64,000 bases of DNA from Amphiscolops sp. MND2022 (lineage: Eukaryota). Below are positions 8,040 through 30,345 of this stretch, one piece after another. The notes under the pieces are model-generated. The model was not told where the DNA came from and did not search any database. It saw nothing but the letters and a program-made list of their open reading frames with translations. Location: the NCBI GenBank assembly GCA_964187785.1, contig OZ076421.1:52018001-52082000 (forward strand), in the 5' to 3' direction. The number at the start of each line of letters is the position of its first letter. The stretch's first letter is position 1. The position numbers were made by a program, and so were the translations under genes.

Positions 8040-8052
8040 ATATATTTAATAA

Positions 8053-8425
8053 ATGTATTCAATTCATAATCGGGTTGACTTGGAAAAATTAAAAAAAATT
8101 ACAAGAAACAAAATCTTTACTAAAAGCTGAAAGATTGAAAGAGAAACTAGGGAAGCAAGACTTTCATTACGATATGGAAGAAGTTTTTGAACCCGTAACA
8201 GAAAATCAGAAACAAAACATTTCTAAACAACAAGAACTTTCCGAAAAGCAACTACAAGCACTACAAGATTCTACCCAAACTACAACACAAGCAATACAAG
8301 ACCAAACTAGAGCAATTCGAGAATCGAGTAACACAATGCAGAAATCAATGCAAAAATCTTTTAAACAGGGAATACAAGAATATGATGAAATTACTAACCG
8401 GAATAATCAGTTTGTTGCGTTCGCA
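8053..8425 (+). pseudogene. Polinton-associated coiled-coil protein (FEPVT motif), truncated
   Basis: Q/E-rich helical ORF with EEVFEPVT directly after the pVI-like gene. There is an A-run frameshift near 8095 and the similarity ends just before the tRNA-like insertion. Confidence 0.45.
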
Positions 8426-8456
8426 ATAAGATTAAATTAAAATCAATCAATAACAA

Positions 8457-8529
8457 GACGGTTTGGCCAAATGGTTAGTGCGCGTGATTCTAAAGCCGTA
8501 GATCGCGGGTTCGAATCCCGGTAACTGAA
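8457..8529 (+). mobile_element. tRNA-like Pol III head (SINE or tRNA pseudogene)
   Basis: A-box TGGCCAAATGG and B-box GGTTCGAATCC at tRNA spacing, with T-arm CGGG/CCCG. The anticodon and acceptor stems pair poorly. Confidence 0.6.
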
Positions 8530-9534
8530 AATATTTGATACTTTCAAATACTGAAAAATATATTTTTCTAATCATTATTCACTTTGCTATCTCGAAACTT
8601 TGTTTAATAACATTTGTCAACAAATATTGTTCTTTTGCATGTTTGCACATATTTTGACATTCATTATTGGTATTGTGTGGGCCGATAATAACAACTAATA
8701 ACAATTCTCTCATGAATAGCTCGTTTTTGAATTTGAGAGTTTTTTGCTGCAACAGTAATACTTATTAGTTTTGAAAATTACGCCAAAGTAGGTCATTTGC
8801 ATTTAAAACCGAAGTGAGCAGTAACTAGGTAAAAACAATTTTTCCAGACCTTTCTAGCGTCCTTTATAATTGAATGCTAACCATTTTGATATGTATGGCA
8901 ATGATTTTGATATATATCTAACAAATGCTCCGCAGGTAAAAAACGGCGGTCAGTTTAAGACATAAATGTCTTAAACTGACAAAACTTCAATCTCTCAAAG
9001 ACATTATGAAACAAAAAATTATTAGTTTTTTAATAATTTTCGGACGTTTAAACAAATTGGAGGATATTTTTTGTAGTCGAAATCTTAAAAAAGATAGAAA
9101 ATTCTATACCCAAAATTTTTTTATCTCTGGATACATCATTGAACAAAAAGAGTAGCCACTTTATCAGTAGACCACCCAAGTTTCGGACAAATTGGCTATT
9201 TGCGATGGAAACAAAGTTCATGGGCCACTTTATCAGTAGACCACAAGTCATTGGAAAGAATGAATATCAAGTCCGCTTCTGTGCACTAAACTGTTTCCCG
9301 AAACATACTATTCAAAACTTTTGAACAACAGGAGAAAATATATTGAATTGCTGAGACAGAAGTTAAGGCAGAGCAGAATAATGACATTAAGTAACAAATT
9401 ATTCGGTTGAAACAAATTAAGCAACGAATTATTCAGTTTAAACAAGTCATTCATATTTTCAGCAAAGTTCCAGTTTCCAACAATCGAAAGAAAGTACTTC
9501 CCTTACAAATTCGCTGTAAAGTTGAAGAAATTAG

Positions 9535-10132
9535 TCATGAGAATAGACAACAGTTAAGATGACATACAAGCAAGGCAAGTAAAAGTTGAACAGCGAACAT
9601 TGGAAGAAACTTACGGAAAAGTTTGTTGACAATGATGGATCTCAATTGACTGAGTCCAAAGCTCGACAGATGAACCTTGTCGTCCCCGACAATCCACTTT
9701 GAACTCATTTTTGTCCCGAGCCCAACGAACGTATACCGATCCATAGCTGAGAACTGGAGAGCCTGGTTTAAGTGCTTGATGCTAAGGAACGTAGCTTCTG
9801 TAGCAATTCTATGAGGCAATCCCATTACAAATACATTTCCCAAGTGGGACAACTGCTCAGAGGCAGCCAGAATTTGAAAAACAATTTCGGGGACTGTTCT
9901 TCTATGTCGCACACGACCTTGTTTCGGGCGAGATTCCAGTCCGTTGGCCCCAAGAAGAATAATAAAGGCATTATACAATTGGGTTGGAATGATGGATATA
10001 ATACGGGGCAGATCTGCTCTACTACCAGGAACAGTGGCAACATCGCAATTATCGCAAATGAGGTTTCTAACCAAGGGAATCACCAATAATTAAAACATCA
10101 TTCGCTGGGTTTTGATGATATATCAGCTCCAT
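9535..10132 (-). pseudogene. Canonical GDSL/SGNH hydrolase (about 198 aa) with one frameshift
   Basis: ATG at 10132 reads ...VLIIGDSL. Removing one G at about 10071 joins it to VRNL...VPG...ILLGANGL...DDKVHLSSFG, giving blocks I, II, III and V. Confidence 0.8.
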
Positions 10133-11316
10133 TTTGAAACCGTTTGAAAAGAAATGCATTATCAAATATCTGGAAAAAGCATCATGTTAGTCTCGAAGAA
10201 GGAGAATTTCTTACATGAAATTATGATGTAATTCCCAGAAAGCACCATGAGTAAATTTTTTGTTCGGAAATTTTAGATAGTAGACGCGTAGCGCCACTTT
10301 CCACTCGATTGATACCGTATTGATCCAAACCATTCGGAAATACATGATTACTAATCATATATTTAGTAAAGAAGCAAGAACTGACACAAGTAAAAGAAGC
10401 ACTCAAACTCTATTAGAAACAAAACGGCCCATTATAAAGAAGCATTAAACAATCGGACCTTAGTTAGTTTTTTTTTACCTCACCGCCCCTTAAGGCAGAT
10501 CTACACCTTTCGCCTCGGGTTGACATTCGCAACCGTCAGCGAGGTCCATGGGACCCCCTCTGAAAAGAACAGGGCAAAAAATACTTGATTGTGATGTGCT
10601 ACAGCCTATCCTAAACCTAAAACCTTTCAAAAATGTGAAGCACAAAAAACATGTCAGACTTATTATAATCTTTTCCCAAAACTTATTCAAAAAATACCGC
10701 TTCATAACATTCACGCACGTCCGTCATCTGAGTAATTATATAAATTACATTTTTGAAAATGTTTAAAAAATGTCACTGCCTTCCAAAATCACAAATACCG
10801 GGCGTCTGGTCAACCGACTAGAAAAAAAGTTTGCCATAATGCAAATTCAAAGAACAACCTAGCTATCTCAGCGGCAAAACACTACTTTGGTTAAAGCCAA
10901 AAACGTCTCAATGCTCAACTCCACTTATTCTCCACTAAGTAAGGAAAAACAACGGTTAGGTTTCAGAATAAAGTCAATTAAGTCTCAGTCTTAAGGTCTT
11001 TTGGTCAAAAAGTCGAAGTAGAAAAAGTCGGTTTTGGGAAAGTCTGGTTTTGGTATGATTTCTCACTTTTTAGGATTTGACGATCTTTATTTAAGTAGAG
11101 TGTGTCAGCGTGGTAAGCTCAAAGAGTACACGTGCTGCCACACTGGTTATATGGTTTGATGGTAGTTTTTTTAAAGTTGTGTATAAGCTTGGAAGGAGTA
11201 CACAAGCTTTTACACTGTTAGTCTTTCGTCTAGATTGTAGTCATCTGTTCAGTCCGTTACGTCATTGTTTGTCATCGTCCAGCAAACCAACATAATTAAA
11301 CCCTACATTTTGTTTT

Positions 11317-11641
11317 AAAACCTAATGTGGAGAACAACACACGTTCACTTTCCGAGTAGAACAATGTGCTTTCCCGTAAAACCTTTACCCGGTACTTCAC
11401 AAGGCGGGAACCACGCTCATCGTCGATTCCACCAAAAGAGCAACATAGCTCGAAATTACATACAACATCGCACGGTGTCCACCCTGTGTAGTAGAACTTT
11501 GTGCCATATTCTACAGTGCCTACTTTTACATTTTTACAGAAAATTAGATGTTGTTTCAAAACCTAATGTGGAGAACAACACACGTTCACTTTCCGAGTAG
11601 AACAATGTGCTTTCCCGTAAAACCTTTACCCGGTACTTCAC
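11317..11641. repeat. 241-bp tandem duplication whose second copy is split by the LINE
   Basis: AAAACCTAATGTGGAG...GGTACTTCAC occurs at 11317-11400 and 11558-11641. The continuation AAGGCGGGAACCACG follows at 11401 and resumes at 13901. Confidence 0.9.
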
Positions 11642-13890
11642 TTCTTCTTCTTCTTCTTCTTCTTCTTCTGTTTTATCTCCTTGCGGATCAGTATCGGTTC
11701 CGTTTGTCTTCTTCAGTCAACTGAGGGTTTTGCATTTGTTCGTTGCTTGGTGTCTTGACATGTTTGTAAGCGCTATCAGGGAATCGCATCTCAGGCAGAC
11801 TCCTTTCTTCGGGACGTATTTTCGAGCTGAAGGCAAGTCTTTCTGTGATGTTTCGAGGCACTTTTTCATGTGGTTCTTCAGTGTGGCTTCTTGTGTGAAA
11901 GTCTTGCCGCATTTCTCGCATTGAGTTTCTTTTTGTTGCGAGTCGTGAAGCCTTTTCCTGTGTATAGCTAGGCCTGCTTTGCTTCTGCACACTTTGTCAC
12001 AATTCTCGCATTGAAGGGTGTTTTCGGTTGGTGTTTTCGTCGATTCCCTTCTGTCTCTGATGATTTCATCGGGTTGGATTACGTGGTTTTGGCCTTGCTG
12101 TCTCTCATATTCTTCGAGGTGTTTTACTCTGTTCCGTACGAGCGCTCTCCACTTGGTTCGATCGGTTATCAGGTGTTCAATATTGTTGGGATCCTCGCCG
12201 GCTTCATTGATAAGTTTGCGCCAGTATGTTATGGTGTTTCTGTGTGGGAGTTTTTTCGTCTTATTCTCTTCTTCTAGTTTGCTGTACCATCCTAGCACTG
12301 CCTGTTTCACCAACCTGTCATCGTTCATTCTCAGAACGTGGCCCATTCTTAGGAGGTGAGCTTTATCTATCTTCGTTCTGAGAGATGTTACATTCAGTTG
12401 TTCTCTGATGTCCGCCATATTTAAGTGTTTCTCTTCCATCTGGCGTAGAGGTTGGCCATTCTTATCGCTCCAGATGTATCTATATCTCTTGTCCATGAAA
12501 GTTTGCATCCTTTTGATCTCTTTCAGCTTGAACGGGCGAACCGATGCATTGAAGAGCATAGTGCTCTCTATGCAGGCTTCCACTACTTTGGCCTGTGTTC
12601 GCTTGGTCAGACGACATTTCAGGAACCTCCTTTTGATGGTAGCCCAGTTCTTTCCCGCCCTTTGGATGCGTTTCGTTGTGTCACTATTGTTCTCCATCCA
12701 CGTTCCAAGCATTCGAATTTCTGTGTTGTTCTTCTCGTCGCCAAAAACCATTTTCTCCTCTTTGTCTAAGTTCGTTTGTTCTTCAAACTCGAGGAGACAT
12801 CTTTCCACTATCCTCTTTCCCTCTTCTACTTCATCGTTGTGACCGATTACTGTTGTATCATCAGCGAAGAGAGAGAGCGTGAAAATTTTTTGGCTTGCAT
12901 CCGAGTTTTGTTGACCTCTGCGTTGTGGAGGAAATCTGTTTCCTGGTAAATACGACCATCTGATCCCGCATTGTTTTCCATTTTCCCTGGCAGCTTCCTC
13001 CCGCTTGCTCTCTGCTATACGAATAGCTGCTTGGTGATATATGTTGAAAAGTGCGGGTGAGGTAGCACACCCTTCCCTCAATCCTCTTTCTGGGTAGAAT
13101 GCTGTACTCACACCCTCCGCACCTTTGACCTTGTAGCTCGTGTGCTCGTGGAGGTCCATTAGTTTGTTTATTATGTTCTGTGGCAGTGAGTATCTTCTCA
13201 GCAGGGCCCAGAGGATCGGCTTGTTTACTCGAGGGTATGCCTTCCTCAGGTCCAGTAAGATGGCTTCTGCGTTGTCCGTGACATTTCTCGACCTTTGATA
13301 CTGTTTGATGTCCTCATTTATTCTGACGAAAATCTGTGTGGCGTCTGCGGTAGAGCGGTCAGCCCTGAAACCTGCCTGGTTCTCATCGAGAAGGCTGAGT
13401 TGCTCGGACCATTCTCGTATTCTCGTGGCAAGGACTCTGGCCAGTATTCTGCTCATAATCGGAAGTAGACAAACTCCTCTATAGTTGTTCATGTCCTTTT
13501 TGTCACCTTTTTTATAGAGGGCAATTATTTGTCCGACTTTCAATGATGCCGGCCACTCTTGAGCTCTATCTTCCCACATGCATTGTATTTTCTGGATGAT
13601 GACTCGTTTGACCTCATCGTCGGCTTGTTTGATGAAGCGAAGTCTTATTCCATCTTCACCTGCCGCCGAGTCTTTCATCTTGTTCATTTCCGCTATTATC
13701 TCGGGCGCCGGTCGGTTCGCCTGTTTTCTTTTTGAAGAGGTGGACTGGTCGGCTAATCCAGCTACCCTCTGTTCCGGAGAGGCTCTTCCAGTTAGTACCT
13801 GGTATGTGCCCCCCAGCCTGAAATTCTTTTTGTCGTCAGAGACGTCCACTAGGCACCATGCGAGGAGGTTGAATTTCATCGCCCAGTCCT
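11642..13890 (-). mobile_element. 5'-truncated RTE-like non-LTR retrotransposon
   Basis: 10-bp TSD GGTACTTCAC (11632-11641 and 13891-13900), (GAA)n 3' tail at 11642-11669, and an RT ORF with no APE domain in this copy. Confidence 0.92.
11717..13890 (-). CDS. LINE reverse transcriptase with C-terminal zinc fingers (5'-truncated ORF)
   Basis: NYRGVCLL, QAGFR, DLRKAY, GLREGC.TSP.LF, LFADD, LG, then CENCDKVCRSKAGLAIHRKRLH and two more Cys/His knuckles. The annotated GTG start lies in the TSD and is artefactual. Confidence 0.92.
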
Positions 13891-13982
13891 GGTACTTCAC
13901 AAGGCGGGAACCACGCTCATCGTCGATTCCACCAAAATAGCAACAAATTTTAACATTTTAACCGTTTTACATTTTAAATTTT

Positions 13983-14421
13983 TTATGTCGACTGCATTTC
14001 ACCGCAAACACAAAAATGAAGATTACAGTTTTTCTCGTTAACTTTTTCCTGGAAACGTGATAGCATGTCTTTCAAATTTTTCAAATCGTTATGACGAACA
14101 CGCATTTCTCGATGTAATTCTTGTTCAAAGTCTCGGCGCGAAAAACGTGATGAAAAATTGCAAACAAAAGCAGCGACTGCCCAGGGCAAACGGTGGGGTT
14201 TTCTCGTGAACTCTGAACCGTCGCCGCAGTTATGTTCCGACAACCGTGTTAACAGCGCGCGCTCAGTTTCTCCTACGTAAAAAGTTTCGGGCGAAGTCGG
14301 GTTCAGACTAATCAAAAGATACACAAAGCCATTAGGAGTGCTTGGGATGTTTTTGTTAAAAGGTACGTAAGATAATTTCGAGATGTTGATTGGCTGAACG
14401 CTGGAATTGCACCTTGAGTTG
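13983..14421 (-). CDS. GIY-YIG nuclease domain, C-terminal part of the transposase
   Basis: GFVYLLISL...FYVGET...TRLSEHN.G.GS.FT...RLPW...DFE (SLX1-like pattern). The frame stays open upstream into the helicase end. Confidence 0.8.
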
Positions 14422-16145
14422 TTTTTAAGATGGATATGATGGCACTTAATGTCACATTTTTGTTACCAACAAAAGTAAGGTTTTTTAATTGTTTGACACG
14501 ACTGACAATTACAAAAACTTGCGACGTCATCCACAAAGCGTAGCTGCTGTCGGTTGCGGAAATGGACGTCGCCAGCTTTTCAAACGTGTCACCCATGAGT
14601 TTGTGCGTTGTCATGGCAACAAGGTTCATGAGCGGTAACTGTACCCCTCGCACTGAGTTCTTCTTGAAAGGCTGAACTAAGCCGGTGTGCTTTGAGAGAG
14701 TCACAGTCCGCCAAGTCAGGTACTCCTCGCGTTCCAACATCCCAGGAGTGATGTCAACTTCCCCACCACTGCTATCTGGGACGTAGATTGTGACCGAGTC
14801 ACCAGTGGGAACCTCGTGAACTACACCAACCTGACCTTGAGACAATTGCTCAGCTTCCAGATTCACTGTGACCCTTACCAAAGCCTTTGAGTAAACAATT
14901 AACTGTTTGAGCTCGTTTACCTTGTCGCTGAGATGGTTACTTACTTGTCGAGAGTCAGTCTCACTCCACACTGAGCTCTTCGAAAGACAGATCTCATCCT
15001 TGGCTTCAAAAATGCGGTAGGATGATCCCGACGCGCGTACTCGCTGAATGTGGCTATCGAATTCTTTCTGTTCAGTTTTCCGTTTGCCAAAAACCCGCAT
15101 TACACAAGGGTCGTCCAAGTCATCCCAGCTGTCCTTGAAGGTGCACTTAGTGTCCAGAATCGCGAGTATTTCAGCGACAGCAGGTTCATTTATGGGACGT
15201 TTCCACATGTGTCGAAGTACAGTTTGACCGTCTGCATCTGTCATTCGAACAAAGTGCGACAAAAAGAACATTGCGAAGTTTGTCAATAGAACAGGACTGA
15301 GGAAGATGTCGTTCCCTTCGATTGACGGCAGCTGCATCTGATCACCACTCGCGATCACTAAAACCCCACCGAAAGGCAAGGTTGACTGCTTCAACTCTTG
15401 AAGTTTGTGGTCCATGGCAGACCACTGTTCAGCACTGATTAGGCTCACTTCTTCCACGAACAGTACTTCCAGGGCCATTAACAGCATCTTCTTGTCATTC
15501 CGGTGGTCCAGTTTCACGAGAGCTTGCTCGGCCATTTTGATCGGTGATCCACAAGAAGAAGGAGGCAAGCAAAACAATTTGTGAATGTGCTCACCGCCAA
15601 AGTGCATCGATCTTCGGGATGCTAAACTAGTTACAAGACAAAACAACCCTTTCGTGAGCGCATAACCCAAAGCCATCGTCAACACATACGTCTTACCTGT
15701 ACCTGGTGGACCCAAAATCAACTGGTGTTTCCTATATTTATGGTCAGAAAACGGATTTTCACAAATTAGTTCTTTCAGTTGTTCTAAAATTATGGTCTGT
15801 TCTTCACGAGACTCTTCAGACTGGAAATTGTTTGGAACAAGTTCACCAGACCAGTCAGATGGTGTTTCTCTGGACACATTTTCAAAAAGGCTGGAATTAG
15901 GAAAATTGGGCCAATTTTTCTGAGTTAAACATTTTATGATGTTTAATTGGGACTGCCGAAGCATCTTTTTAGCCTTATCTTCCAATGCTTCAGTCAAGGT
16001 ATCCATCTTTGTAATGGGCAGCCCTTCATTATAAATGTCATTATCTATTAACATTCCCTTGAATGCTGACTTTGCCGCCAGTAGATTGTTATCAAAAGAA
16101 CGCGTACCGCCTGGTAGGTATCGCAATTGCTCGAGTACATATTTT
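14422..16145 (-). CDS. PIF1-family SF1B helicase domain of the transposase
   Basis: GPPGTGKT, FVEEVS, FGGVLVIASGDQMQLP, VRMTD, QLPL...TTHKLMGDT, FVIVSRV. Confidence 0.9.
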
Positions 16146-18955
16146 TTTCAAAATTTCATTGACATCATTTTCATCGTATACTTGCTTGTCTGGTACAACC
16201 CCGCCCTTCACGTATGCATCCTTCAAAGTTGGCACATCAAAAAGTTCAAATTCAGTTTCGAAAGCAGCGTTGGACAGTAAAAAGTGAATGAGAAAATTAG
16301 CAGGATTGCGAGGATACACTTTTGAAAAAACAACCTCTGCTGGTGTATTTGACAAATTTGGGTCACTGGATACAAAAAGAGACCGTCCCGGATGTGAGGA
16401 AATGTTCAAAACTTCAGAAATTATAACGAAGGCATCGAGCAGTCTACTATCGGTTAAATTTGCCGCTAAAGATTCTTGGACAGCAGCTGAAAATTCGGAA
16501 ACTGCAGAAGGTCTTAAACGAATGGCATAATTTTCACCATCCACCCAAGTTGATTCCCTAACGTCGTTTTTCAAAAATCGTACACTGACAGTCTCCCTTT
16601 TACCGGACAATTTTTCGCGTTTAAACCACCTGAAGTAGGGTCTTAGTTTGTTTACAAAAAGCAATTCAGGAGGACGTAGAGAAAAAACAGTTACTTTGTC
16701 AGTACTAAATGGCGTTTTGTTGACACTTTCTAGAACAATTTTTTGGCTCCTAGTAAAAAGTCGATGACGTGGTAACCTCAAATGATGTTCCCTGATCTCA
16801 CATGGACCTTCGTTGGCCACACCTGGTATATTTGTTCTTGAACAAGTATTATTTTTTCTTTTCAAAATGACACCTCCCCGATTTTCTAAAGCTACTGTTG
16901 GGACTGAAACAAAATCCATGGTTGTTATTACAGTTGGTAGTTGTAACATCCATGACACACATTCTGTACTTGCAATGGTGGTAGAATTTATGATACCTTG
17001 CGTTTTATCCTGCTTCGCTTCTCGAGCAAGGATCTTTCTAACACCGCCTAACTTTTTGTTTTCAATTTTTTGAACCTGCACATTTAAGACATTGTGAGCA
17101 TTTTCTGGATTGATGGCCACATCAGCATGCTCTTCTTTTCCAGCAGCGTACGATGTCAAGTACCTGGATGCGACCGACTTGCAAACCTTTAAAACGTTCA
17201 AACTGGATTTACAAATACTCCAGAGGGCAACCTTCAGCGGTGACATGTGCTCTCCTCTGGTGGCCGCATACATGTATTTACCTGCCATTAGAGTTGTTGT
17301 AACCTGCAAACACCTATCAAAACCAGGCCTCGGTTCAGCCAAATCAATTTCCTGTAATGCTACTACGGCTTCTTCCGAATGTGGCTGGTGGAACTCTTTG
17401 TACCAGGGAACGTTACTTTAATGGATAGGGCGGGAAACGACACTTTCGCTCGCCGTTCAACCTTACTTTTTTAAGACAGTGCCCTTTCTCACAATCATGA
17501 CTTTGAATGCGAATACAATCGTCGAATAACTTACCTGCATGCTTCTCACTATCAACAGTTCCGAAATTCATTTGAAACAATTTTTTAAACTCATGGAGGA
17601 CGTGTTTGTGTGCACATTGAATTTTCTCGATGATGTCCTGTGTTGAATTTTTTAACCAAAAAAGAATATGATAATGTTGCAGGTTGGCTGCTGCACTTTG
17701 AAATTCTGCCCTACCCCAAGTTTTAATAATTTCACCCAAAAGGTGTTCGTCTGAAAACCTTAAGTAGTCAATCAAAAGTTCGATAGTCCTAGTCCAGCAT
17801 CTCACACTGATGACCATGTAAGCCTGGAGTACTTCCTTCAGTTCTTCGGTGGTTGCGCTGCCGTACTGTTCGTAGATTGCGTTAACGACCTCAGCAACAC
17901 CAGGGTGTTCTTTCTGGTTACATGTAAAAGTTACAAAAAGATCCGGTGTTTCAGTGGCACAAGCAGTTCCTAATCGATTTACATGAACGTCGCTGTCGAC
18001 GCTATCCATTTTAAGAACAGACTCTGTTGATGTAAGCTGCTGAGGTCTGTACTTACCAATAGTGATAGTCTGCAGCCCACGTTTGAAAAATTGATTTGTG
18101 TGGCACTTTACAAGTGACAAATTTAAAACACAGTCAAAAGCATACATTATATAGACCAAATTCGAAGAAGTTAAAAGCGTACCATCCTTAAGTCTTAAAC
18201 GCATGTGTTCATGCAAAACATCGAATTCTAATTTGGAGTTTGCATTTTTATCGTCATACAAGAAAAAAGGCAGAGCGCCAGGGAACGAACCGTCTTCTAA
18301 GTGCTTGTAAAAAACGTTTGGGAACAGACACGCTTCAGGTTGCATCAGGGGGATAGAACGACCCGGCAGTGTGTAAACGAAATTTTGGAAAAAGCGTTGG
18401 AATTTTTTGCCTATGTGGGAGGGATATTTTAATCTTTTAAGTAGTTGACATTCACCATTTAAAAGTACATGCATGGGAACGAAATTAGAGTCATTGGACA
18501 AGTAAACGGGCTCACAGCCAGCGTCCGTGGCAAAAGCATCAATTTCTTGGAACCCGGCATCCACAATTAATTGTGGGCAATCAAACTCATCCATGTTGGC
18601 TTCCGGTTCTTGTGGTCCCTGTCGGTCGTCCAGCACGAAGCTCGGACCTGGCAAATTGTTTTCAGTCTGATCTTGTTCTTCAATCAAAAAAGCTTCCTCG
18701 TCACTGCTGTCTTGGATGGTATCGTCGGACGGCGTGTTGTCGACCAAAACCTTATCGTTAGTGTCACAGAACTCGCGGAAATGAGTTTTACAAACGGACG
18801 CTAAACAATTCTTTTCCGGACAACGCCAAGCAGACTTCCTAGTACAGATTTGCTGATCACCGGTGTTTTTAGGCATACTACATTTTCGTTGGCTTTTAAA
18901 ATAATCAGTAGATAGAGGCAGGTTATGTTCATTACAGAAATAAATTCCTTGACCC
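16146..18955 (-). CDS. HUH/Y2 Rep endonuclease region of the transposase (frameshift at about 17418)
   Basis: Motif 1 PDLFVTFTCN, motif 2 AEFQ...LQHYHILFW, QSHDC...CRFP, motif 3 SRYLTSYAAGKEE (YxxxY). Confidence 0.9.
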
Positions 18956-21046
18956 CCGTGTATTTTAAGTATCGCAGCTTAGTTTCTTCAGTCAAGTCTG
19001 TTTTAGAAACGTAAATTAAAAAGTCCCATGTCCTATTATACTGGTATTCCAAAGTTGGATCCTTCACGGCTCGGCTTCCGTCATTCTTTATGGTCCAAAA
19101 ATTGAAAAAAGGATCTCCGTGCCTCAAACTCACCTTACCTTCAGCTGAGATGATAACAATTGAATGTTTTTACCATTAATGGATGTTAAATTAAAAGGAA
19201 TCTGACTATCCCTAGATTGAACATCGGAGGCAACGACTAAAATTAGATCGTTTCGGGCACAGTCAATCCTAACAGTGTCAACATTACCTCTGTGACAGTG
19301 CACGACGTGACAACCTTCTAACAATTCACAAAAAGATACCAAAGGTTCTGCTTGAGGAGGAAACAGTTCAGCGAAGGCACTCTGCAAGCAATTAAATAGT
19401 GATGAAATTGTGTGGTTATATTGAAAACTTTTCTTTCCTTCAAGTCGTTTCAAAATTTTACAAATTTGAGAAATGTGATCATTTTCGTCGCAAAGCTGAC
19501 ACATTTTATACCATAAAGAATCATTGTTTAGAGAAGCATGCGCAAAGACAAAAATGTTATTTTCTTGTGAAACACCTTTGGAGAACACTGATGGTTCAGA
19601 ACCGTATCCATCTAATCTGTGACCGTATACCAAAGGTTTTTTATAGTCATCACGATTTGTAACATCTTCTGGGCAAGTTTCTACATAGTCTTTCATGCGC
19701 ATCAGTGTGTTCATGTTAAAAACAATAGCGTTTTCACAATGCTCTTCGATTAATGACAAAGAAACTGGCAATTCAAACCCCAAGAAAGCTTCAGCTAAAG
19801 TATCACTAATTTCTTGATTTTGACAACAAACCCTAATGATTTCTTTAACATCGCTCCTACAATTTATCAAAAGTTTTTCCATGTTTTGTTGTAAGTAATT
19901 CAAAGGGCATTCGAAATTCCTGAAATTATGTAAAACAGTAGAACTAACTCCACTTATGCGTCCACTGTCAACCCGACACATAGTGAAGGTAGCACTTTTT
20001 GCGCCAATTTTGAGAGGTCTTACAGTTCTGACACTTGAAACCATTAGAGCTAACCTGTCGACGAACTTGGGGCTGATGTTACCTGCCACTGGATTAGTCG
20101 GTACATGCACATAATTAAGTAAAACACCGTTCTTATGGTCCGAACATACAACTAATTGCAAACCTTTTTCTTTGCAAATTACACATGGTGAAACGGGAAA
20201 TTTTTCTAAGAGAGTTAACGTTTTAGTGAAATCATCTCGAGCTCCTTTTAGAAATTTTTTACTGTTTGCATTAAAGCTAGTGAATAATGGAAAAAGGTAA
20301 TTCAAAAAATGGGCAAATGAAATTCCGTTCGATTTTTCGACGAATTCAAAGCATCCTGCAGGGCACCTAATGTTAGGAAAGCAGTGTGTAGTTAAAGCTT
20401 TTACAAGTGTTTTAGCAGTTCTAGTGTTAATCAAATTCCAAAAGTCTTCCTTTTCTGGGGTAATATCCCTGAATACAGAATCTGTAACGGAAGTCGTAAT
20501 TAATGGGTGAACAGTATTCATGTTTCGTTTAAAAGATTCCTTAATTTCATGTGGAAGTAGTTTATAGAGTTTCTCAGCGTTAGAGTTGAACCTATGTGTG
20601 TCAAAAAGTAGAGTATACATAACGCTGGGCCAAGCGTTTGGCCAGTCTTTGTGACGAGTAGTAGTATTGTTGTTGTAAGCAAGACAATGTTGACAGAAAG
20701 TGATTGTATCAGTAGTCATCTCAGTCACACGTTTACCAAACATAGTCGTATGAAGTGAGACACGTTGTAAAGTTTGAAAATCAAGTCTGTAATTGTTTGT
20801 GCTCGTCGGGCAACATTTATCACACATCTGCTCTTCTGACATCTCCACATCATTGGGGGCATCTGGGGGATTGGGGACATTGATCGCTACGACATCTTGT
20901 TCGTTAACATCTTGTTCTAATTCAATTCTCTGACTCTCCTGACATCTTGCACAGACTCCATCCGCTGTTATGAAAGTATTGTGAATCTCACATCTTCGTC
21001 TCCGGTTAGAAATGCTGGTTTTCCGTCTCCCTCTGCCACGAGGCAT
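18956..21046 (-). CDS. Cys/His-rich N-terminal extension of the transposase (frameshift at about 19169)
   Basis: ATG at 21046 with a basic leader, several CxxC/CxxH clusters, and no stops once single-base shifts at 19167-19171 and 18953-18957 are allowed. Confidence 0.65.
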
Positions 21047-22773
21047 TGTGGACTTTTAGCCTCTTTGATAGCCAAGCAATACAAGTTAATGTAGGCAAAG
21101 CAGATCAAAGCAATTCAAATCAAATCTGGAAAAACGCTGATCCTGATAGACATCATCAGAAAAAGTCACCATTTTTGACACATAACAAAGATTGCGTATA
21201 ACTGGAAACACGGTTGCACTTCATTTTCACCTTTGCCAGCATATTTACCGAGGATTACCTGTTTTACCACTACTTTGTGCAGAACACCTAATCACCGACC
21301 ACGCTTTCCGTCGATCGATGATCACCATTTCTACTCAACCCACGAACTTACCAGACGTAACCTGTAACCAAATACTAACTGTTTGCAGAAAAAGAGAACT
21401 CCGACACCTGGAAAAAGAAAAAAAATTAGTTGGAAATAATATGAATTCAAAACCTACCTAAACTTAAAATGTCATAAGTCAACGTCAGGTTCAGCTACAG
21501 AGTCTTATAATAGCTCGTTTTTCTCGTTCACTCGAGCACTTTCCACTAGCATCCACTTGCAATACTAATTGTGTGGAAGTTTTTTACCTTTGGGAGGCCT
21601 GAAAATGAAAAAAAAAGTTTTTGAAATTTTTTCGGAAAAATTCTAAGTCATTTTACTTTTACCCGGGGAATCCTGGAACGCTGAAACTGCGGCAAAAGGG
21701 CCAAATGATTTTTTGGGAGGTAAACCGGCCAGGGGAGGCCTTTAGGAGAGGTCCCGGAAAAAAATCTGGGCAAAAAACGGCAAAGATAGAGTAGGTTCTC
21801 GAAAATTTGCGAAAAAATGCGTCCGAATTCCGGCTATTACTCAGTCAATTTTATTTCGATCTGGACGAAAATTTGTCTACGGACTCCTTACGAAGTGCCC
21901 AGCAAAATGGACGTCCACATGCGAATCGCTCCGGGCACCTGGGGGCGAGATATGGGCTCTTGAAAAAAAATTTCGAAAAAATGCCATTTTTCGACTAAAA
22001 AACTAAGATTTTGACCCACATTCTGCGTTTTCACAGCAAAATGCCAGAAGGGATTAGTTCTTAGAGTTGTTATAGGAAGCCGTATGCAAAATTTCAGCCA
22101 AATCGCGGAGCTGGAGATCGGGGTTAGACTCCCGTTTGTGCCTTACGTTGAGTGTCGTAGGTATCCGACATTTTGGCTCGGGCAAGGGGCCCTACCCTGC
22201 CCTCGAAGTGTTAAGCAAATCGATGGATTATGGCACCTAGACGTGTACGGCTGATAAGAGAGTCAAGAAGGCAGGAAATGTTCAAAAAAGAAAGTTACTC
22301 ACGTGATTGGAGAAGTAGTCGTCAGTCGAGTGTTGGTTGAGAGGTTAATTAGTGGTTAAGGATGTTCAAGAATGTGGAAGTGTTGTCGTTACATTTTCGA
22401 AATTTTAAGAAATAAGGAATTTAGGAAAAAGAAAAGTGGAACCACGCTCATCGTCGATTCCAGCAAATGTGTATCTCCCTCAATGCTACAAATTTCCTAA
22501 CTGATGTAAACCTAAATACCGTATATTAAACTTTAATCAAAATTCATTTTTAAAGAAATCGCTTGGTAAAGTTTAAAAAATTTCAGTTCGCCCAGAAAAA
22601 ATATAATTTCAAATTAATTCTGGTATCAGTTTCACGTTCGGGTAGAAAGTTAACGATTTTCAAAGAAACACAATCGATTTGACAAATTAAGTTCAATTGT
22701 GGAGAGTGGCTGACGGCTCTAAGGGCGACAAGTCACTCAACCGCAACAGCGCTCAGAGAGTTTGTGTTTTCAT

Positions 22774-23843
22774 TCATCCACACTGTGAAGCAGTTTCACC
22801 CTTGTAACACAGGGCAGCTTGTGCATCTGTTATTTGCTCTTAGGCAGCAGGGAGCAAACGTGGAATCGCTTGCTCTCCACGGTTGTGCCGTCATCATCCA
22901 CTGCAGGCTTAAACCAGCCTATTATTCGAAACCACCCCCTGAATTGATAGCCTGTACCATTTTTCGAACACTTTCATCCAACTTGAACCGATCAAGGAGG
23001 TCCGAATCAGGTTTCATTGACTTGACGTTGGCGCTCACGAACACCATTGTTGTGGAATTTGAATAGAGTTCTATTAAGTCTTCGTTTTTAGTTGCCTCCG
23101 TGATTTCTGGACACCTGAATTCAAAAAGCAGAGACCATGTTTTTTTAGGTCAGGCCTCAGTGCACGGACATTGGTCATGATAATTTTGCGTCGCACACGT
23201 TCTCACTGCAGACGTCTTCGGCTATGACGGCTGAGTCCATAGCGAGTTTTTTCGTAACAAAATTAAAGAAACGAAATTCGGTAGAGTTGCCCTCAACGTC
23301 ATAAGGTGGCAGCGTTTTGGCATTGTTTACGGATGTGGTCGGAATCAGAGGTTCCTTTGTACTGATCAAGGCCGTGCCACCACGACTCAGGTTACCCTCC
23401 ATCGTTGGTTTCAAAATCTCCACTTGGCAGCCAGGAGACAAGGCCTCGTGGTACCGGAATAATCTTCTGGTTTCCTCTGAGTTTGCAGAGAATAGTGCCA
23501 GAACCGTTGAGGATCCGGGCACTCCAAAAACCACGAAGCGGTTGTAATTTTCCACTTCAACCTTCCGACTACTGCCAAAATTTTTGCTGGATTTCGTATT
23601 CATTAGTTTTCTCGTAGGCTGGGTTGCATATAGGTAGGTGGCTTTTATTCTATGAAGTCTCGGATTGTTGCTGGTTGAGGACTGCAATTGGTCAACGGAA
23701 ATAGTTTCAAACTCTGGCAACAAGGCCTGCGCTTGGGTCACCCTCAAGTTAGATTTAAAGAAGCCGGGCATTACGGAATCTGGAAAAATGGCAAACCGGT
23801 CTCTTCGAGGTCTTAAAATAACAACCGTGCCGATCTCTGTCAA
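22774..23843 (-). pseudogene. OB/Zn-ribbon-like accessory protein, full length but disrupted
   Basis: 222-aa ORF continues after a frameshift and stop as CPCTEA*PKKTWSL...DRFKL...GWFKPA...KRFHVC, colinear with 35914-36906. Confidence 0.75.
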
Positions 23844-24806
23844 AAACGAAAAAATGTTTTAACCATGAAACTTGCGGTAAACAAGATGATGCTAGAGAAT
23901 TCACCTTTAAATGTTTTATCGGATGGAATCAAATAGAAAAATGCAATGAAGGTTGACCTAAATAACCAAATATCGAATAATGAACGGTTAATCATACATT
24001 TCATTTTATAAACTCCTGAAAAGATTTTTCCATGATGAATTAAATTAATGAAATTGATGACTCAACGAAAAGATCAATTAACAGTATGAAATCGACATAA
24101 TTTTATTCTGCCAGCAATTGAACTGTTCCTGAACTATTGCAAGAAAAGCAAGAAACTATTGGTGTTTGTTTTTTTTCAAAACTGATTTCTGTTTTCAGCT
24201 TTTCTCCTAAAAAATGACTATTTACCTTTTTTTACTTTTATATTTTCCAATTGTTCTGATTTTTTTCTTCATTTCTTCTTTGTTTCTGTTCGGTTTCCTG
24301 TTTTTTTTGTATTGTCTCTTTGTGTTTCTCAGTTTCTAGAGTTTTTCTTTTTTATTTTTTTATTTTCTGTTTTTTTTGTGCTTTTCGTTTTGTGTATTTC
24401 TGTTTTTTTGGTTTTTTGCTTTTCTTGTTTTTTCGTTTTTGGTTTTTTTGGATTTTCTGTTTGTGAGACTGCTACTCTGGAGACGTTTTGAAGCAAACGC
24501 AAAAAAATCTCCAGAGCAGCAGGCAATCCGGCAAGCAGGCTGATTCCTACCCAGTCCTCTTCCACGCCGCCAGGAACGAGTTCCACATTTCAGAACAAAG
24601 CGTGTTCATTTTATTGGAATGATTCTCCACCTTATTAGATTAACTGCACTTTTTTAAAATGAGCGTTTTTAAATTGAAAAGCGAACGAATTTTGAAGGGG
24701 TGGAATGGAAAGAAGACTGGGAAGGATGCTCAGTTTGAGCCCAAAGGGGCTTAAACTGACAATGTGTATGGTAATCAAAATTACAAAGATGCAATGCTCC
24801 CACAAA

Positions 24807-25444
24807 TTAATTGTTCTGGCCCAGAAACCTAATAATTTTGGCCACGGACAACTTCAATGAAATAGGAGTTTGATGCGCAGCATCATGTTGTTTGAATGAT
24901 GAATTACTCAGCTTGAGATCTCTTTCGGACTCTTTATTTGAGAAGCTTGTTCATCCTGATGTCCAGATTACTTTGAAACTCCAATGGTTGGTCTTCTTTT
25001 GATCTACTTGTATTCACAGCTAATTTAAAATTGTCTTCAGTCCTTCGCGTTAATACGAAGACGAAGTTTTGTTTGAATTCTCGTTGAAGGCTGTTGAAAT
25101 TGTTAAATACTTCTGCTTTCAATGGGGTATTTTTAGATGTCTCTTTGAGGAAAGGCGGTAATGTTAACGAGTTCGAAATAATGTCATGATAAATTAGATA
25201 TAATAATCATGATGGCATTAGGTCCCCATTCAACAGCTTCTTCAATGAGTCGCACAATTTTTTCCGGCTTTGGATGTCCCAGTTTCGCGCTTCCGCGAGC
25301 AAATATTTTGTAATGAATATCCTTGGGAACTGTTGGAGCATGCTCCAGAACCTGGCAATTGTTTAGACATGTGTAACGTTGCCAACACTGTCTCTTGAAG
25401 TGCACTAAATTGCTGGCACCGACTAGTGCAACGTTATAAACCAT
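24807..25444 (-). pseudogene. Divergent SGNH-fold hydrolase (GASN...DxxH type)
   Basis: VALVGASNL at the N-terminus, D.I.NS.T in the middle and FKQHDAAHQ near the C-terminus. Frameshifted. Confidence 0.65.
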
Positions 25445-27739
25445 GTTTCAACTGGAAAACAAGTACTGATTAAGTAGGCATTGGATGAAAGAATTCACGT
25501 CTGAGAGCATTGATTCTGAACCTACAACCTTCCAACCTTCAACCTTTCAAAAAACATGAATTACGAGAAAAAACATGTAATATTTATTGAATTAGTAATC
25601 GGAATTAGCTTTTCTTCTCTGTCTGGTGGTTCTATTACAAATGTTACTAATATACATAATATCAGCCCTCATCTGCCGAATCTTCTTTTCTTCTTCGTCT
25701 GGTCGATCTATTATAATTATTACTATTATTAATTTTAATAACCCTCATCTTCCGAATTTTTTCTTCTTCGTCTGGTGCTGCATTAGTTCATGTGCGTGCT
25801 AAAGCAGAACAAACACCCTTTCTGTCAAATACGTTTTAATGCTCAACTCCAATCAATGGTTGCATGCGGCACATCATGGTTTTAATGCTCAACATTTTTT
25901 GCATGCGGCCCTCAAATGCGATTGAAATTTTATAAAAAAAGTTATGGCCGTTTTTTGGTCGAAAAATTGAGCACTTGGTCGAAAAATTGCATCAAAATGT
26001 AAAGAAATTGGCTAATATCTCAAAATGCAGTACTTTTTGGGTATTGGCTGTGAAACTAGCTCGGAACAATCATTTCATGACTGTGGTAATGCACTGAACA
26101 CAAGTTTTTACAATTTTTGAAACTTCGACATTTTTGAAATTTTTTTCACTTCTATCAGAACCCCGTATGACAAAAACACCTCCGAAAAAAAATTTATTTG
26201 TTTCAAATTAGAAATCTTAGTGTCCATGGTTTCTGTTGGAAACTACTGGCTGCCAAACACTCTATAGTTTTCATCGAATGAGAAATTACATGTCTTTTCG
26301 AGGTCATTGGGGTTTCGCAAGGATTTCACAACTTAGTTGTAATTTACAAATTGGTCATTTTCAACAGAATATTTTCTTCGAGTCTTGTCGAATATAGCCC
26401 CAAAAACGAGCTTACTGGCAACGTAGGAACAATTTATAGTAATAAAAAGTTTTTGAAAATTATTTTCGCCCGGTCCTCGGTCAAATTTCAGACATTGGGA
26501 ACTTAACTTCGAAACATTTCAACCAAAAATTCCATTTTTTGTCAGGTCAAAATTTCAAATTCAGCTTTTGAAACAAAATTATTAACTCTGCCGTAACCAG
26601 TGGGGCCCATGATACTCGAAAACACGACTGGGACTGGTACCAGTGGCTCCAATATCCTTTGAGCCGCGATAAGGCGTTATTCAGAGCAAAATCTCTTATT
26701 CGAAGTAAACATCTCGGAAGCCTGGGATCCCAGGCTTCCCAGATCTTGAGTGATTTCGTCAAAAGTTTACTAGTTTTTGTCAAACACTATGTACCCAGAA
26801 TGCGTAGTGTGAGTTTCATCACTAAAACAAGGTGTCTGAAGAAATCGGCCTGCTAAAGGTGTTGTGTGAGACACTTATTTCTCATTTTTTGCTATATTTC
26901 CAAAAATTTTAGACCATTATCTCGAGAAGCTAATTTCGCAGAATACTTTGTTACTTTATTCAAACTTTAGAATATAGTTGAACCCTATGGTTGTTCAGAA
27001 GCCCTCAACTATTATGTTTTCCAAAAAATCCTTTCGCATGTGTTACACTTGTAGCAGAATAAAAAGCTGGAGTTAAAATTTACGCACTGTTACTACAATA
27101 GGATCGCAATGGTTGTACCTAAAAACTCTTTAAATACTTCTAACACCACCTTACGGACCCAAGATGATTCAAAATACCGTTAACAATGCTCACATCTGCT
27201 CTTTCTACAGTCCAGGCTGCACAGTTGTTGCATGTTTTACATGTAGCTGTTAACTGAATCTTGTGATAGCCTTTTAAGTTGGCCTTGTGTCAACTTGGGT
27301 AGGCTACCACCACAAAAATCTTTAAACAAAACTTTCAACAAAACTACCATTTGTTTATTGGATATTGTTGTCGATTCCTAACTTCGTGATTCGATCCTAT
27401 CGTTAGTACCTTCCATCAGGTCAGCAAACGATAGCATTCAGTGTTTGATAAGAACCTATGAACTCAAAGAAAATTTTCTATGTTTTTTTTGTCAGAAAGA
27501 AGTAAAATAAACAATCAAAATATATAATTCTAATCTTTAGGAACTATAATTCCCACTTTTTTACCGTTAGCAGCCCTCTACCCACGCCCGACGTCCTCGC
27601 GTGATAGTAGCACAACGCCACATAGCGTTCCGACGCCCACCGTCCGTGGGCATGTCGAGGCATGCCCTTCGATGACGTATGCCGAATAATTTTTTTCTGT
27701 GTTCCTGAGCGCGGGAGAGGCTAGGTCGATCAGTGATGA

Positions 27740-28900
27740 CACCATTCGCTGCTTTACCTGCAAACTTACCATACGTAACCTATTACCAAATATTACATTT
27801 TTTGCAGAAAAAGTAAACTCCAACACCTTGGAAAAAGGAAAAATTTATAGATAGTGAAGTTGTCAACGTCAGATTCAGCTACAGAGTAGTTATATAGCTC
27901 ATTTTTCTCGTCTATCCGAGTACTTTCCACATGCATTCACTTTCAATCTTAGTTGTGTGGAAGTTTCTAACCTTTGGGAGCCCTGAAGTTGAAAAAATGA
28001 TTTTTTTCAAAAACATTTCAGGACTTTTATCTTTTACCCGGCGAATGCTGGAACACTGAAACTGCTACAAAAGGGCCAAATAGTTTTTCCGGGAGGTAAA
28101 CCGGCCAGGGTGGGCCTTTAGTAGGGGATATGGAAAAAATGTGGGCAAAAAACGGCAGAGATAGACTGAGATTTCAAAATTTTTTCGAGAAATTGCGTCC
28201 AAATTTCGGCTAATACTCAGTCCATTTTACTCCGATCTGCACGAAAATTTGTCTACGGGAGCTCTCGAAGTCCCCAACAATATAAACGTTCACATGCGAA
28301 TCGCTCCGAGCACCTGGAAGCGAGATATGGGCTCTTGAAAAAAAATTCGAAAAAACGCCATTTTCGACCAAAAACCTAAGATTTTGACCATTATTCTGCA
28401 TTTTCACGGCAAAATGCCAGTGACGATTAATTCTTAGAATTGTTTTAGAAAGCCGTATGCAAATATTCAGGCAAATCGCGGGCCTAGTTTAGAAAATCGG
28501 GGTCTCGCCGTTAATTGGCCTTACGTTGAGTGTCGTAAGTATCCGACGTTTTGGCTCGGGCAAGAGGCCCTACCCTGTCGGGTGTTAGTCGAAAGGATAA
28601 TAAGTGGTTAATGATGTTCAAGAATGAGAAAGAGTCGTCGTTACATTAGTTTTCTCGATTTCAAAATTCGCCCACTTGGAACCTAGACGTGTACGGTTGA
28701 ACGGAGAGTCAAGAAGGCGGAAAAGTGCTAAAAAAATGAAAATAGTTACTTACGTGATTGACGAAGGAACCTCTTTTGTCGGGTGTTGGTTGAGAGGTTA
28801 ATTAATGGTTAATGATGTTCAAGAATGTGGAAGTGTTGTCGTTACATCGTGCTGAAATTCGAAATAAGCAAACTTGGAATCACGCTAATCGTCGATTCCA
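27740..28900 (-). repeat. Second copy of the non-coding spacer upstream of the transposase
   Basis: Colinear with 21330-22470 (AACTTACCA.ACGTAACC, GGGAGGTAAACCGGCCAGG, GAGATATGGGCTCTTG, GCCTTACGTTGAGTGTCG). Confidence 0.8.
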
Positions 28901-29212
28901 GCATTTATATATCTCCACCAATACTACAACGTTCGTAACTGATATGAACCTAAACACCGCTAGTGAATTTCAATTATTACTAATTTTTGAAAATTGCCCG
29001 ACGCCAAGTCCAAAAAATTCCTTACGTCAGAAAACTTGCAATTGTTCTCATTTGCTTAATTTTTCTTTGATTTGATTCTTTTTAACTTTAAGAAACGAAA
29101 TACAAACAAAATGCTGAAGTTGCAGAGAGTGACTGACGGCTCTAAGGGCGACAAGCTATTCAACTGCAACAGCCCGGATGCGAGTTTAATAGTTTTTAGC
29201 AATCTTTCTCTT

Positions 29213-29830
29213 TTAATTTGCACTGGTGACTGGTGCAGCAACAGTCGTGCTTGCTGAAACTCCTTCAGATGCATCACCGCCATTAAATAGTTTCGCTAGC
29301 TGGTCATTCGTTAACCGTTTCGCGGGCTCAAGGGAACAAACATGTAGCTTTTGATGCTCCAATGCCACACCGTCATCATCAAAGGCTGGCTTGAACCAGC
29401 CAATGATTTTGAAGCCTTGGTTTTTATTGATGTCAGCCACCAGCGCTTCCACCGAAGTGTCTAGTTCGAAGCGATCAATATCATCGCTGTCAGCCTTCAT
29501 AGCTCGACAAGTTTGAGTGAGGAAACTGTCGGATACTCTGTTTGAATACAATTTGATTTTCGTGGCAGGAGTAAGCCACTAGCAACGCCCAAGTTTTCAC
29601 TTGGGAGGCCTCCAAGCATGGACAGGGAGAATGGTATGTCTGTCCATCGCACACGCTCCCCGGACAGATTTGCTCACAGATGATAGCCGACTCTATTGAC
29701 AGACTTTTCGTTTCAAAGGAAAAATAGTGGTACCGATGCTGGTACCAAATTGCTGATAGTGGTACCAAATTGCTCGAACGTTGCTGCATCGACTGATTGG
29801 AATTCTGGAAGCAAAGAAGAACTACTCAAT
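29213..29830 (-). pseudogene. OB/Zn-like protein C-terminal fragment
   Basis: ICEQICPGSVCDGQTYHSPCPCLE...DRFEL...GFKIIGWFKPA. Confidence 0.75.
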
Positions 29831-29959
29831 TTAAGGTCGAAGTATCTGACTCGTTCTTTGAGTAGTTTGTTCGTTCGAATTTCAAGATTACTTATGAAAT
29901 CCAATGGATCGTCTCCTTTTGCTCTACTTGTTGTTGCACTCTTCTTTCCTTCCCCGGGT

Positions 29960-30345
29960 TAACACGAAAACGATTTCGCGTTTGTATTCTCTTTGAAGGC
30001 TGGTGAATTGATTCACTACCTTTTCCGGTTTTAATGGAGCATTTTTTGATGTTACTTTAACGAAAGGTGGTAAAGTCAGAGAGTTTGAAATGATGTCATG
30101 ATGTATGACGATGACAGTCGGTTCCCATTCTATAGCTTCTTTAATTAAAGCTGCAGAATTTTTTCTGGGTTAGGATGTCCAAGCTTCACGCCTCCGCGAG
30201 GAAAAATCTTGTATTCGACGTCAATAGGAATTGTTGGAGCATGTTGCTGAACCTTTCAACTGTTGGGACAGATGCACATTTGCCAACTTTGCCTGTTAAA
30301 GCTAACTAAGCTGCTGGCACCGACTAGCGCAACTTTGTATACCAT
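29960..30345 (-). pseudogene. SGNH-like gene fragment
   Basis: MVYKVALVGASSL...YKIFPRGGVKLGHPNPEK, close to the 25444 copy. Multiple lesions. Confidence 0.65.

Follow-up and report, generated by a model that had tools for sequence, protein, structure and literature searches.

A decayed head-to-tail cluster of probable Helitron-like units with SGNH hydrolase, OB-like and RepHel-GIY genes in Amphiscolops sp. MND2022

Layout of the cluster and its transposase

We analyzed a stretch of 64 kb from Amphiscolops sp. MND2022 (contig OZ076421.1, positions 52,018,001 to 52,082,000), hereafter the window, whose own positions serve as coordinates below. The window contains a single full-length unit of a putative Helitron-like transposon (25810-10877), hereafter the focal unit, and all features of the element lie on the minus strand. 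In the direction of that strand the focal unit consists of a 76-77 bp satellite, an SGNH hydrolase gene, a gene for a predicted OB-fold protein, a gene for a Rep-helicase transposase with a GIY-YIG nuclease domain (RepHel-GIY), and the 3' end (Table 1). Once a nested long interspersed nuclear element (LINE, 13892-11641) is subtracted, its length is ~12.67 kb. The window also holds five internally deleted units and 14 mini-units arranged head to tail, as seen by self-comparison and by tblastn with the open reading frames (ORFs) of the window. We interpret the window, with a probability of about 0.8, as a decayed head-to-tail cluster of a family of autonomous Helitron-like rolling-circle transposons. 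The genes of the focal unit are all disrupted, RepHel-GIY by five frameshifts. Every copy in the window is broken and, judging from their sequences, all of them are inactive.

The assignment to Helitron-like elements is carried by the transposase. The focal remnant retains a Helitron_like_N domain in 18978-17416 (Pfam E 3.8e-10), a PIF1-type helicase in 16147-14315 (Pfam E 8.8e-12) and a GIY-YIG domain in 14462-13986 (PF01541, E 9.9e-8, 32.6 bits against a cut-off of 22.6). In this copy the HUH motif HYHIL is found at 17676, the tyrosine motif YLTSY at 17162 and the Walker A motif GPPGTGKT at 15712. Both histidines of HxH are invariant in the alignment, and YLxxY is present in the relatives as well as in the focal copy. 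The element therefore has an HUH Rep with HxH and two tyrosines followed downstream by a Pif1-like superfamily 1 (SF1) helicase, the combination by which Helitron-like elements are recognized. The focal GIY-YIG ORF has the catalytic core of that nuclease family, reading GFVYLL ... FYVGET ... R ... E. Exo_endo_phos, the domain of the Helentron apurinic/apyrimidinic (AP) endonuclease, was absent from the focal pieces and from intact relatives in Pfam searches, and these did not detect DUF6570, the Pfam marker of HLE2, either.

The intact relatives come from the window's own assembly (ENA ERZ25074608); related loci of this and other samples are numbered L001 to L014. Uninterrupted RepHel-GIY ORFs of 2,375 aa (L012), 2,455 aa (L002), 2,777 aa (L001) and 2,811 aa (L003) were found. 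Rep, helicase and GIY-YIG are together in a single ORF at L012, L001 and L003, and a 790-aa ORF at L005 spans the helicase and GIY-YIG, so that RepHel-GIY is indeed one protein, as first proposed from the broken pieces of the window. Compared with PDB sequences, an intact homologue matches Pif1, the closest solved relative of its GIY-YIG domain is SLX1 (1.9e-5), and the match to Helraiser is weak and confined to the helicase. One intact relative gives a weak OTU-like hit at its N-terminus (E 0.027). An exhaustive search with the 159-aa GIY ORF matched 309 proteins, 150 of which were listed; among the matches listed, at least 16 proteins of 1,664-3,596 aa match this ORF at their extreme C-terminus. 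Pfam analysis of four of these identified Helitron_like_N, PIF1 and GIY-YIG in two (P0162 and P0177), PIF1 and GIY-YIG in the Styela clava protein XP_039257388.1 (P0158), and the helicase only in the last (P0155). The ratio of nonsynonymous to synonymous substitution rates (dN/dS) between the RepHel parts of the focal copy and L005 is 0.06-0.18.

The units are joined at a recurrent sequence. A terminal 26-nt motif followed by GTGTTT, with the 3' end reading ...AAAGTAGTGTTT, occurs 17 times on the minus strand of the window, and in 16 cases the leader or satellite of the following unit comes directly after it. The motif at 10921-10877 alone borders unrelated DNA. There are two junction types, in which GTGTTT is followed by a leader beginning either with ATACTAGAGC or with GTTCTGC, and their divergence begins at the last base of the focal copy. 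The similarity of the focal 3' region to other copies ends exactly where L005 and the 43 kb copy enter the satellite of the next unit. At its other end, the focal unit meets the preceding one at 25811/25810, directly after the GTGTTT of the latter, and a satellite of 76-77 bp stands before every SGNH gene.

DNA identity between neighbouring units is often no higher than 65-80% (self-blast), and the SGNH and OB copies of the window did not lend themselves to nucleotide trees, given their divergence and fragmentation. Between the 42 kb and 47 kb units, each of the two genes shows a difference of only 3-4%. The three tandem mini-units of 1.5 kb are 93% identical (self-blast); their helicase pieces lie at 32145-31776, 33662-33296 and 35214-34828 (tblastn), with terminal motifs at 34049 and 32524, and they are a deletion derivative distinct from the mini-units that carry SGNH. 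Each of the eleven latter mini-units matches L005 8715-10808, and so contains the final ~70 bp of the 3' region, followed by the junction, the satellite and SGNH. All eleven SGNH copies end before block V at a shared premature stop (tblastn), and dN/dS among them is ~0.67. These mini-units look like non-autonomous derivatives retaining both ends.

A preliminary description of this DNA had proposed a unit of about 12.7 kb whose gene order recurs, whole or deleted, at least six times, in copies of different subfamilies and in head-to-tail arrays. The measured length, the one full and five deleted units, the low DNA identity between neighbours and the 16 of 17 terminal motifs that abut a next unit all agree with this. 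The ends proposed at that time, 10910 and 25850, correspond to starts of the terminal motif but lie 35-45 bp off the actual junctions, and the word "giant" was an overstatement, since a Helitron of 12.7 kb is large without being giant.

Table 1. Features of the Helitron-like cluster in the window.
Feature	Coordinates	Strand	Basis
Focal unit, 5' leader with 2.3 copies of the 76-77 bp satellite	25609-25810 (satellite 25777-25609)	minus	TRF
Focal unit, SGNH/GDSL-type hydrolase pseudogene, in three frames	24810-25435	minus	tblastn with intact L005 and L012 copies; six-frame reading
Focal unit, OB-fold, zinc-ribbon (RPA-like) gene remnant, in three frame pieces	22836-23858	minus	tblastn
Focal unit, non-coding OB-RepHel interval, conserved among units	21056-22469	minus	blastn to L005 232-647 and L012 67-1206
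Focal unit, RepHel-GIY transposase pseudogene	13986-21046	minus	Pfam; tblastn colinear with residues 1-2373 of the intact 2,375-aa L012 protein, five frame changes
Focal unit, 3' region ending in terminal motif and GTGTTT at 10877	10877-11640	minus	82% identity to L005 8406-8785
Nested 5'-truncated APE-type LINE (reverse transcriptase and C2H2 finger), foreign to the Helitron	11641-13892	minus	homologue domains, flank alignment
Deleted unit, RepHel missing: satellite, SGNH 30333-29839, OB 29732-29219, pre-RepHel 28903-27725, 3' end	25811-30836	minus	
Three tandem 1.5 kb mini-units: satellite, pre-RepHel piece, helicase fragment, 3' end	31043-35336	minus	
Deleted unit: SGNH 39102-37966, OB 36900-35920 (one in-frame stop), pre-RepHel, helicase fragment 35214-34828	34828-39102	minus	
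Deleted unit, RepHel missing: SGNH 42550-41938, OB pieces 40926-39617, pre-RepHel	39128-42899	minus	
Deleted unit: SGNH 47949-47314, OB 46871-46185, helicase C-terminus and GIY-YIG remnant 45581-44669, 3' region 44218-43329	42900-48687	minus	
Eleven head-to-tail mini-units of 1.55 and 1.32 kb	48688-64000	minus	self-blast, TRF, tblastn
Further deleted-unit remnant: OB 1885-1424, pre-RepHel 611-350, helicase fragment 399-23	1-1885	minus	tblastn

Some further features of the window were observed. The SGNH copy at 39102-37966 is split between blocks I-II and block III by ~0.5 kb (38427-38938), which could be an insertion or an intron-like gap. The focal 3' region contains an internal direct repeat (11380-11640), with GTGAAGTACCGGGTAAAGGTT at about 11640 and again at about 11400, and ~240 bp of it are seemingly duplicated beside the LINE insertion site. 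The DNA flanking the focal 3' end (2000-10800) is AT-rich, with 30-39% G+C at 4-10 kb. Its minus-strand ORFs at 3656-4114, 4151-4771 and 9538-10089 have no significant Pfam match, the first giving sub-threshold hits only.

Formation of the arrays and phase of the unit

Two processes could have brought the units together, and they do not exclude each other. Ordinary tandem or segmental duplication, by unequal crossing-over after a few insertions, would leave near-identical neighbours, as are the eleven SGNH mini-units (88-96% identical, evolving almost neutrally and with a common premature stop), the 42 and 47 kb units and the 1.5 kb triplet. As an account of the arrays in general, it is a possible but less likely explanation. 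Full and deleted neighbours belong to different subfamilies and are joined by two junction types, which argues against plain duplication. Adjacent units at L003 have diverged under purifying selection, unlike copies that decay in place. Moreover, wherever the motif can be detected at a junction, a 3' end is connected to a 5' leader, also where the two units have different internal deletions. The difference in subfamily between neighbours, the precision of the junctions and the divergence of adjacent units under selection make it probable that the arrays formed by end-to-end insertion or from rolling-circle multimers. Local unequal crossing-over was probably added to this, since the SGNH mini-units are so similar and so weakly constrained.

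A head-to-tail array conceals the phase of its unit from direct reading. We infer the 5' boundary, hence the phase, from three observations: the only 3' end that borders unrelated DNA, at 10877; the L001 locus, which is solo; and the position from which the two junction types diverge. Read in the other phase, the unit would start at RepHel-GIY and have SGNH and OB downstream of it, which would turn the terminal motif into an internal sequence and the focal copy into one truncated behind that motif. L012, L013 and L014, on three contigs, can be read in that way, with an intact RepHel-GIY followed by the motif, the satellite, SGNH and OB, and OB is also downstream of RepHel-GIY at L002, L004, L009 and L011. 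The other phase is nevertheless improbable. The focal copy ends at GTGTTT against unrelated DNA at precisely the base where the two junction types diverge, and L001 has SGNH, OB and RepHel-GIY in this order with nothing related downstream. In addition, the sequence past OB at L012 continues into the pre-RepHel region, and OB lies upstream at L010. With the satellite leader placed at its start, a complete unit would thus be ~12.7-13 kb long and comprise the leader with the 77-bp satellite, SGNH, OB, the RepHel-GIY frame, a 3' region of ~0.7 kb and GTGTTT.

HLE2 elements insert between T and T and have short terminal inverted repeats. The sole visible 3' flank reads GTGTTT/T. No convincing inverted repeat or subterminal palindrome was seen at the ends. 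DNA comparison did not delimit the ends of the L001 and L003 subfamilies, in which only the coding parts align. A separate observation was made at L012 (13495-20486): downstream of intact SGNH and OB genes, a pre-RepHel stretch of ~650 bp is repeated at least five times at a spacing of roughly 1.25-1.3 kb, and no RepHel follows it within the locus.

The accessory genes and their shared history

The focal SGNH remnant retains block I (VGASNL, at 25423) and block V (DAAHQ); the window's own SGNH copies are frameshifted or end before block V. Pfam gave no match for the SGNH protein, either singly or as an alignment, and a profile search against PDB sequences returned nothing useful. A word-based search with one SGNH ORF found this genome's copies only, and a profile search found 58 relatives. 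When 29 of these were aligned, GAS, G and N proved invariant, and most of the sequences retain H. The AlphaFold2 model of the protein (pLDDT 75, pTM 0.75) was submitted to Foldseek, and all matches with E <= 0.001 are SGNH/GDSL hydrolases or designs on that scaffold, including PAF-AH Ib alpha and TesA, the top ones with a probability of 1.00. The protein also scores 0.94 to GDSL lipases in the Protein Atlas. Taken together, the family displays blocks I, II, III and V and the predicted fold of SGNH/GDSL hydrolases. The clade to which the window's copies belong (P0122, P0283, P0285 and P0288) has an extra insert of ~17 residues after block I, CNC-x-T-x-x-C ... H, which was not found in the other clades of alignment A3; from its composition, this Cys/His-rich insert might bind metal.

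Members of the SGNH family also occur in other contexts. A locus from a third sample (L007, 10001-14814) has the layout of a LINE, with a 211-aa SGNH esterase, a 333-aa ORF and a 942-aa ORF for an AP endonuclease and reverse transcriptase (APE-RT). The esterase family of the Helitron is therefore also a module of LINEs. At L006 (4382-12874, ENA ERZ25878734), eight intact SGNH ORFs of 208 aa, 96-99% identical, are repeated with a tandem period of 1,124 bp and followed by a reverse transcriptase (RT) gene; this array parallels the SGNH-only array of the window, but its ORFs are intact. The SGNH copy at L008 stands alone.

The focal OB remnant is 66% identical to residues 1-195 of an intact 350-aa protein at L005 (tblastn), with frame changes at about 23190 and 22930. 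Nine OB proteins from five samples have the motifs YDR, C-x4-C ... C-x-C and N-x-x-G-G-W in common; YDR is invariant, as is the cysteine motif in all nine. We take this four-cysteine zinc ribbon to resemble that of RPA70 DBD-C, judging by its spacing. In the Protein Atlas, the OB protein scores 0.90-0.92 to POT1, CDC24/RPA, MEIOB, CTC1 and Ssb-like families. Foldseek on its low-scoring model placed LEF-3, RPA, HIN, POT1, MCM10 and TPP1 at the top of the matches listed, with a best E of only 1.5e-3. These fold-level resemblances make an OB-fold single-strand binder the likely product of the gene. The name "RPA-like" given to it in the preliminary description is apt as regards these hints and the zinc ribbon, although not as regards Pfam.

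The order SGNH, OB, RepHel-GIY is found in the window and at L001, L003, L005, L012, L013 and L014. OB adjoins RepHel-GIY at every locus examined, in five samples, with a varying position or strand at L002, L004, L009, L010 and L011. SGNH stands beside RepHel-GIY only in this genome's subfamilies. These subfamilies are old: the RepHel of the window subfamily shares only 31-35% identity with that of L001 or L003, which are themselves 45% identical in RepHel, and synonymous sites are saturated. Selection has acted on the accessory genes, dN/dS between adjacent L003 units being 0.16 for SGNH and 0.10 for OB. Trees of RepHel-GIY and OB, built from nine units, agree at every supported split; their common splits separate four loci from other samples from five of this genome, and group L012 with L005 and L001 with L003. 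One locus has a setting of its own: at L004 (1-27968, a contig of a Joint Genome Institute (JGI) metagenome), a solo RepHel-GIY with OB on the opposite strand sits amid eukaryotic host-type genes, with a Nipped-B-like cohesin loader upstream and a tubulin/FtsZ-family gene downstream.

Helitrons are known to capture genes, so SGNH and OB might be host genes recently captured or merely adjacent and copied along. Capture was the interpretation given to texim, an SGNH gene of fish (PMC4021074). Some members of the SGNH family also lie apart from RepHel, namely those described above beside the LINE genes of L007, in the tandem array of L006 and as the lone copy of L008. We consider a recent capture very improbable here, as both genes are single small ORFs kept in fixed order and orientation on at least eight contigs and across synonymously saturated subfamilies, their catalytic residues are conserved, and the OB tree tracks that of RepHel in five samples. 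The sequence comparisons thus support the claim that both accessory genes are long-standing parts of the element. For OB this holds across five samples with congruent trees; for SGNH it holds only within this genome's subfamilies. The same distinction applies to what had been named beforehand as speaking against the claim, namely occurrence away from RepHel and incongruent trees: OB comes through on both counts, and SGNH only within those subfamilies.

The RT frame with RVT_1 and C2H2 domains inside the focal unit (13957-11720; six-frame ORFs, Pfam) is a 5'-truncated APE-type LINE, because its homologues of ~1,250 aa carry Exo_endo_phos, RVT_1 and zf-C2H2. It ends in a (GAA)n tail at 11668-11641, is flanked by a target duplication of ~12 bp, GTGAAGTACC(A/G)GG, and has one copy in the window (tblastn). 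Penelope-like elements with a permuted domain order, GIY-YIG being N-terminal, exist. A Penelope-like element inserted behind the helicase, suggested by the same-strand GIY-YIG ORF (14462-13986) lying within 30 bp of the RT frame, is refuted by the AP endonuclease domains of the RT homologues, by the RT's own tail, target duplication and single occurrence, and by the fusion of GIY-YIG behind the helicase in one ORF at L005, L012, L001 and L003 and in many proteins lacking RT.

Proposed mechanism and relation to known systems

Several observations weigh against an autonomous Helitron-like family with these three genes. The unit has neither 5'-TC nor 3'-CTRR, the canonical Helitron ends by which HLE1 is recognized, and its last 134 nt fold into a 3' hairpin no better than shuffled sequences do (z 0.06 to 2.2). 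Its 5' end was never observed against non-element DNA. SGNH is absent at five RepHel-GIY loci (L002, L004, L009, L010 and L011), and in the tree of its family the Helitron-borne genes form two clades that are not placed together. A constraint joining these two clades was not rejected by the approximately unbiased (AU) test (p 0.18 and 0.45), and one old acquisition or two separate ones are both possible. The OB assignment comes without a Pfam match, singly or as an alignment, and without a PDB sequence match, and the AlphaFold2 model of this protein, made from 5 sequences, is poor (pLDDT 44). Finally, transcription evidence was sought and four runs of one sample were obtained, none of them shown as RNA.

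The Helitron-like family is our preferred interpretation. A complete unit would encode an SGNH/GDSL esterase of 200-220 aa, an OB/zinc-ribbon protein of 330-470 aa and a transposase of ~2,400-2,800 aa, composed of an N-terminal region, an HUH two-tyrosine Rep, a Pif1-like helicase and a C-terminal GIY-YIG domain. RepHel would drive rolling-circle transposition, as its domains indicate: Rep would nick the element ends, and the helicase would unwind the transferred strand. The OB protein, which probably binds single-stranded DNA according to its fold-level resemblances, may coat and protect the displaced strand. The AP endonuclease of Helentrons is thought to nick the target or the second strand, and by analogy GIY-YIG could supply such a second nick. 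The esterase might be an accessory acquired from, or shared with, LINE retrotransposons. Arrays would arise when new copies land exactly at the end of a resident one, or from rolling-circle multimers, and mini-units would expand by local unequal crossing-over.

A broader reading would make RepHel-GIY with its co-evolving OB partner an undescribed and widespread Helitron-like lineage, with members in tunicates, several uncultured eukaryotes and this host; its GIY-YIG would replace the AP endonuclease of Helentrons and direct new copies to the exact ends of resident ones, and its esterase would have been exchanged with LINE retrotransposons. Taken jointly, these propositions are tentative and rather unlikely to hold all together. 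If they were true, end targeting by GIY-YIG would explain the precise head-to-tail arrays, and the esterase would add to the modules that DNA transposons have derived from retroelements.

The usual description of a Helitron is of RepHel with captured fragments now and then. In the present family, the transposase has kept two small intact genes and a third nuclease domain across deep divergence, with purifying selection acting, and this long association suggests that they have roles in transposition. The intact copies at L012, L001 and L003 offer a concrete and testable set of proteins. They raise the questions of the role of the second nuclease, of the help given by a single-strand binder, and of why the same esterase family is found in LINEs and in Helitrons.

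Earlier publications describe the SGNH-Helitron link, Helitrons with RPA genes and a moss Helitron family with a GIY-YIG domain; we found no account of their combination in one co-evolving unit, of its spread or of the OB partnership. Among the closest known systems are Helentrons and HLE2, in which RepHel is also extended C-terminally by an endonuclease and internal tandem repeats are also present; TC/CTRR ends are absent here, and the weak OTU-like hit in one intact relative is a further likeness. The nuclease is GIY-YIG here and an AP endonuclease there, and DUF6570, terminal inverted repeats and the subterminal palindrome were not seen here. In the HELIANO study, an RPA-like gene was enriched upstream of RepHel in HLE2 (PMC11417382). 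Like the RPA70-like genes of plant and animal Helitrons, the OB gene described here is a separate gene beside RepHel for a probable OB-fold binder with a four-cysteine zinc ribbon, but it has no Pfam RPA domain and the similarity lies at the level of fold and features.

HelenSM92 of Sphagnum magellanicum is an HLE2 family reported to carry a GIY-YIG domain stably beside RepHel (PMC11417382). It resembles the present element in this respect, as compared by description only, and differs in being a plant family, mentioned in one sentence, for which no SGNH or RPA partner is described (PMC11417382). CR1-like LINEs carry esterase ORFs of the same SGNH sequence family (L007), but there the carrier is a retrotransposon, and the Helitron-borne clades are distinct branches.

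In teleosts, the SGNH gene texim immediately precedes a Helitron coding region and is oriented like it (PMC4021074). It is related to PAF-AH alpha subunits and to the esterases of CR1 (LINE) elements, and forms multicopy clusters; the platyfish teximY genes teximYa and teximYb contain 15 exons and were taken for a host gene acquired by capture (PMC4021074). The likeness, again by description only, is an SGNH gene upstream of a Helitron in both cases. The gene described here differs in being a single ORF of 200-220 aa that evolves with the element, and the texim report makes no mention of an RPA-like gene or a GIY-YIG domain (PMC4021074). In the light of the present unit, texim may be linked to Helitrons as a component of the element and not as a host gene that was captured. 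Helitron arrays of the head-to-tail kind have been described in Drosophila (10.1101/2021.06.02.446622), and the precise arrays and both-ended mini-units of Amphiscolops add material on how satellites and gene arrays grow from rolling-circle elements.

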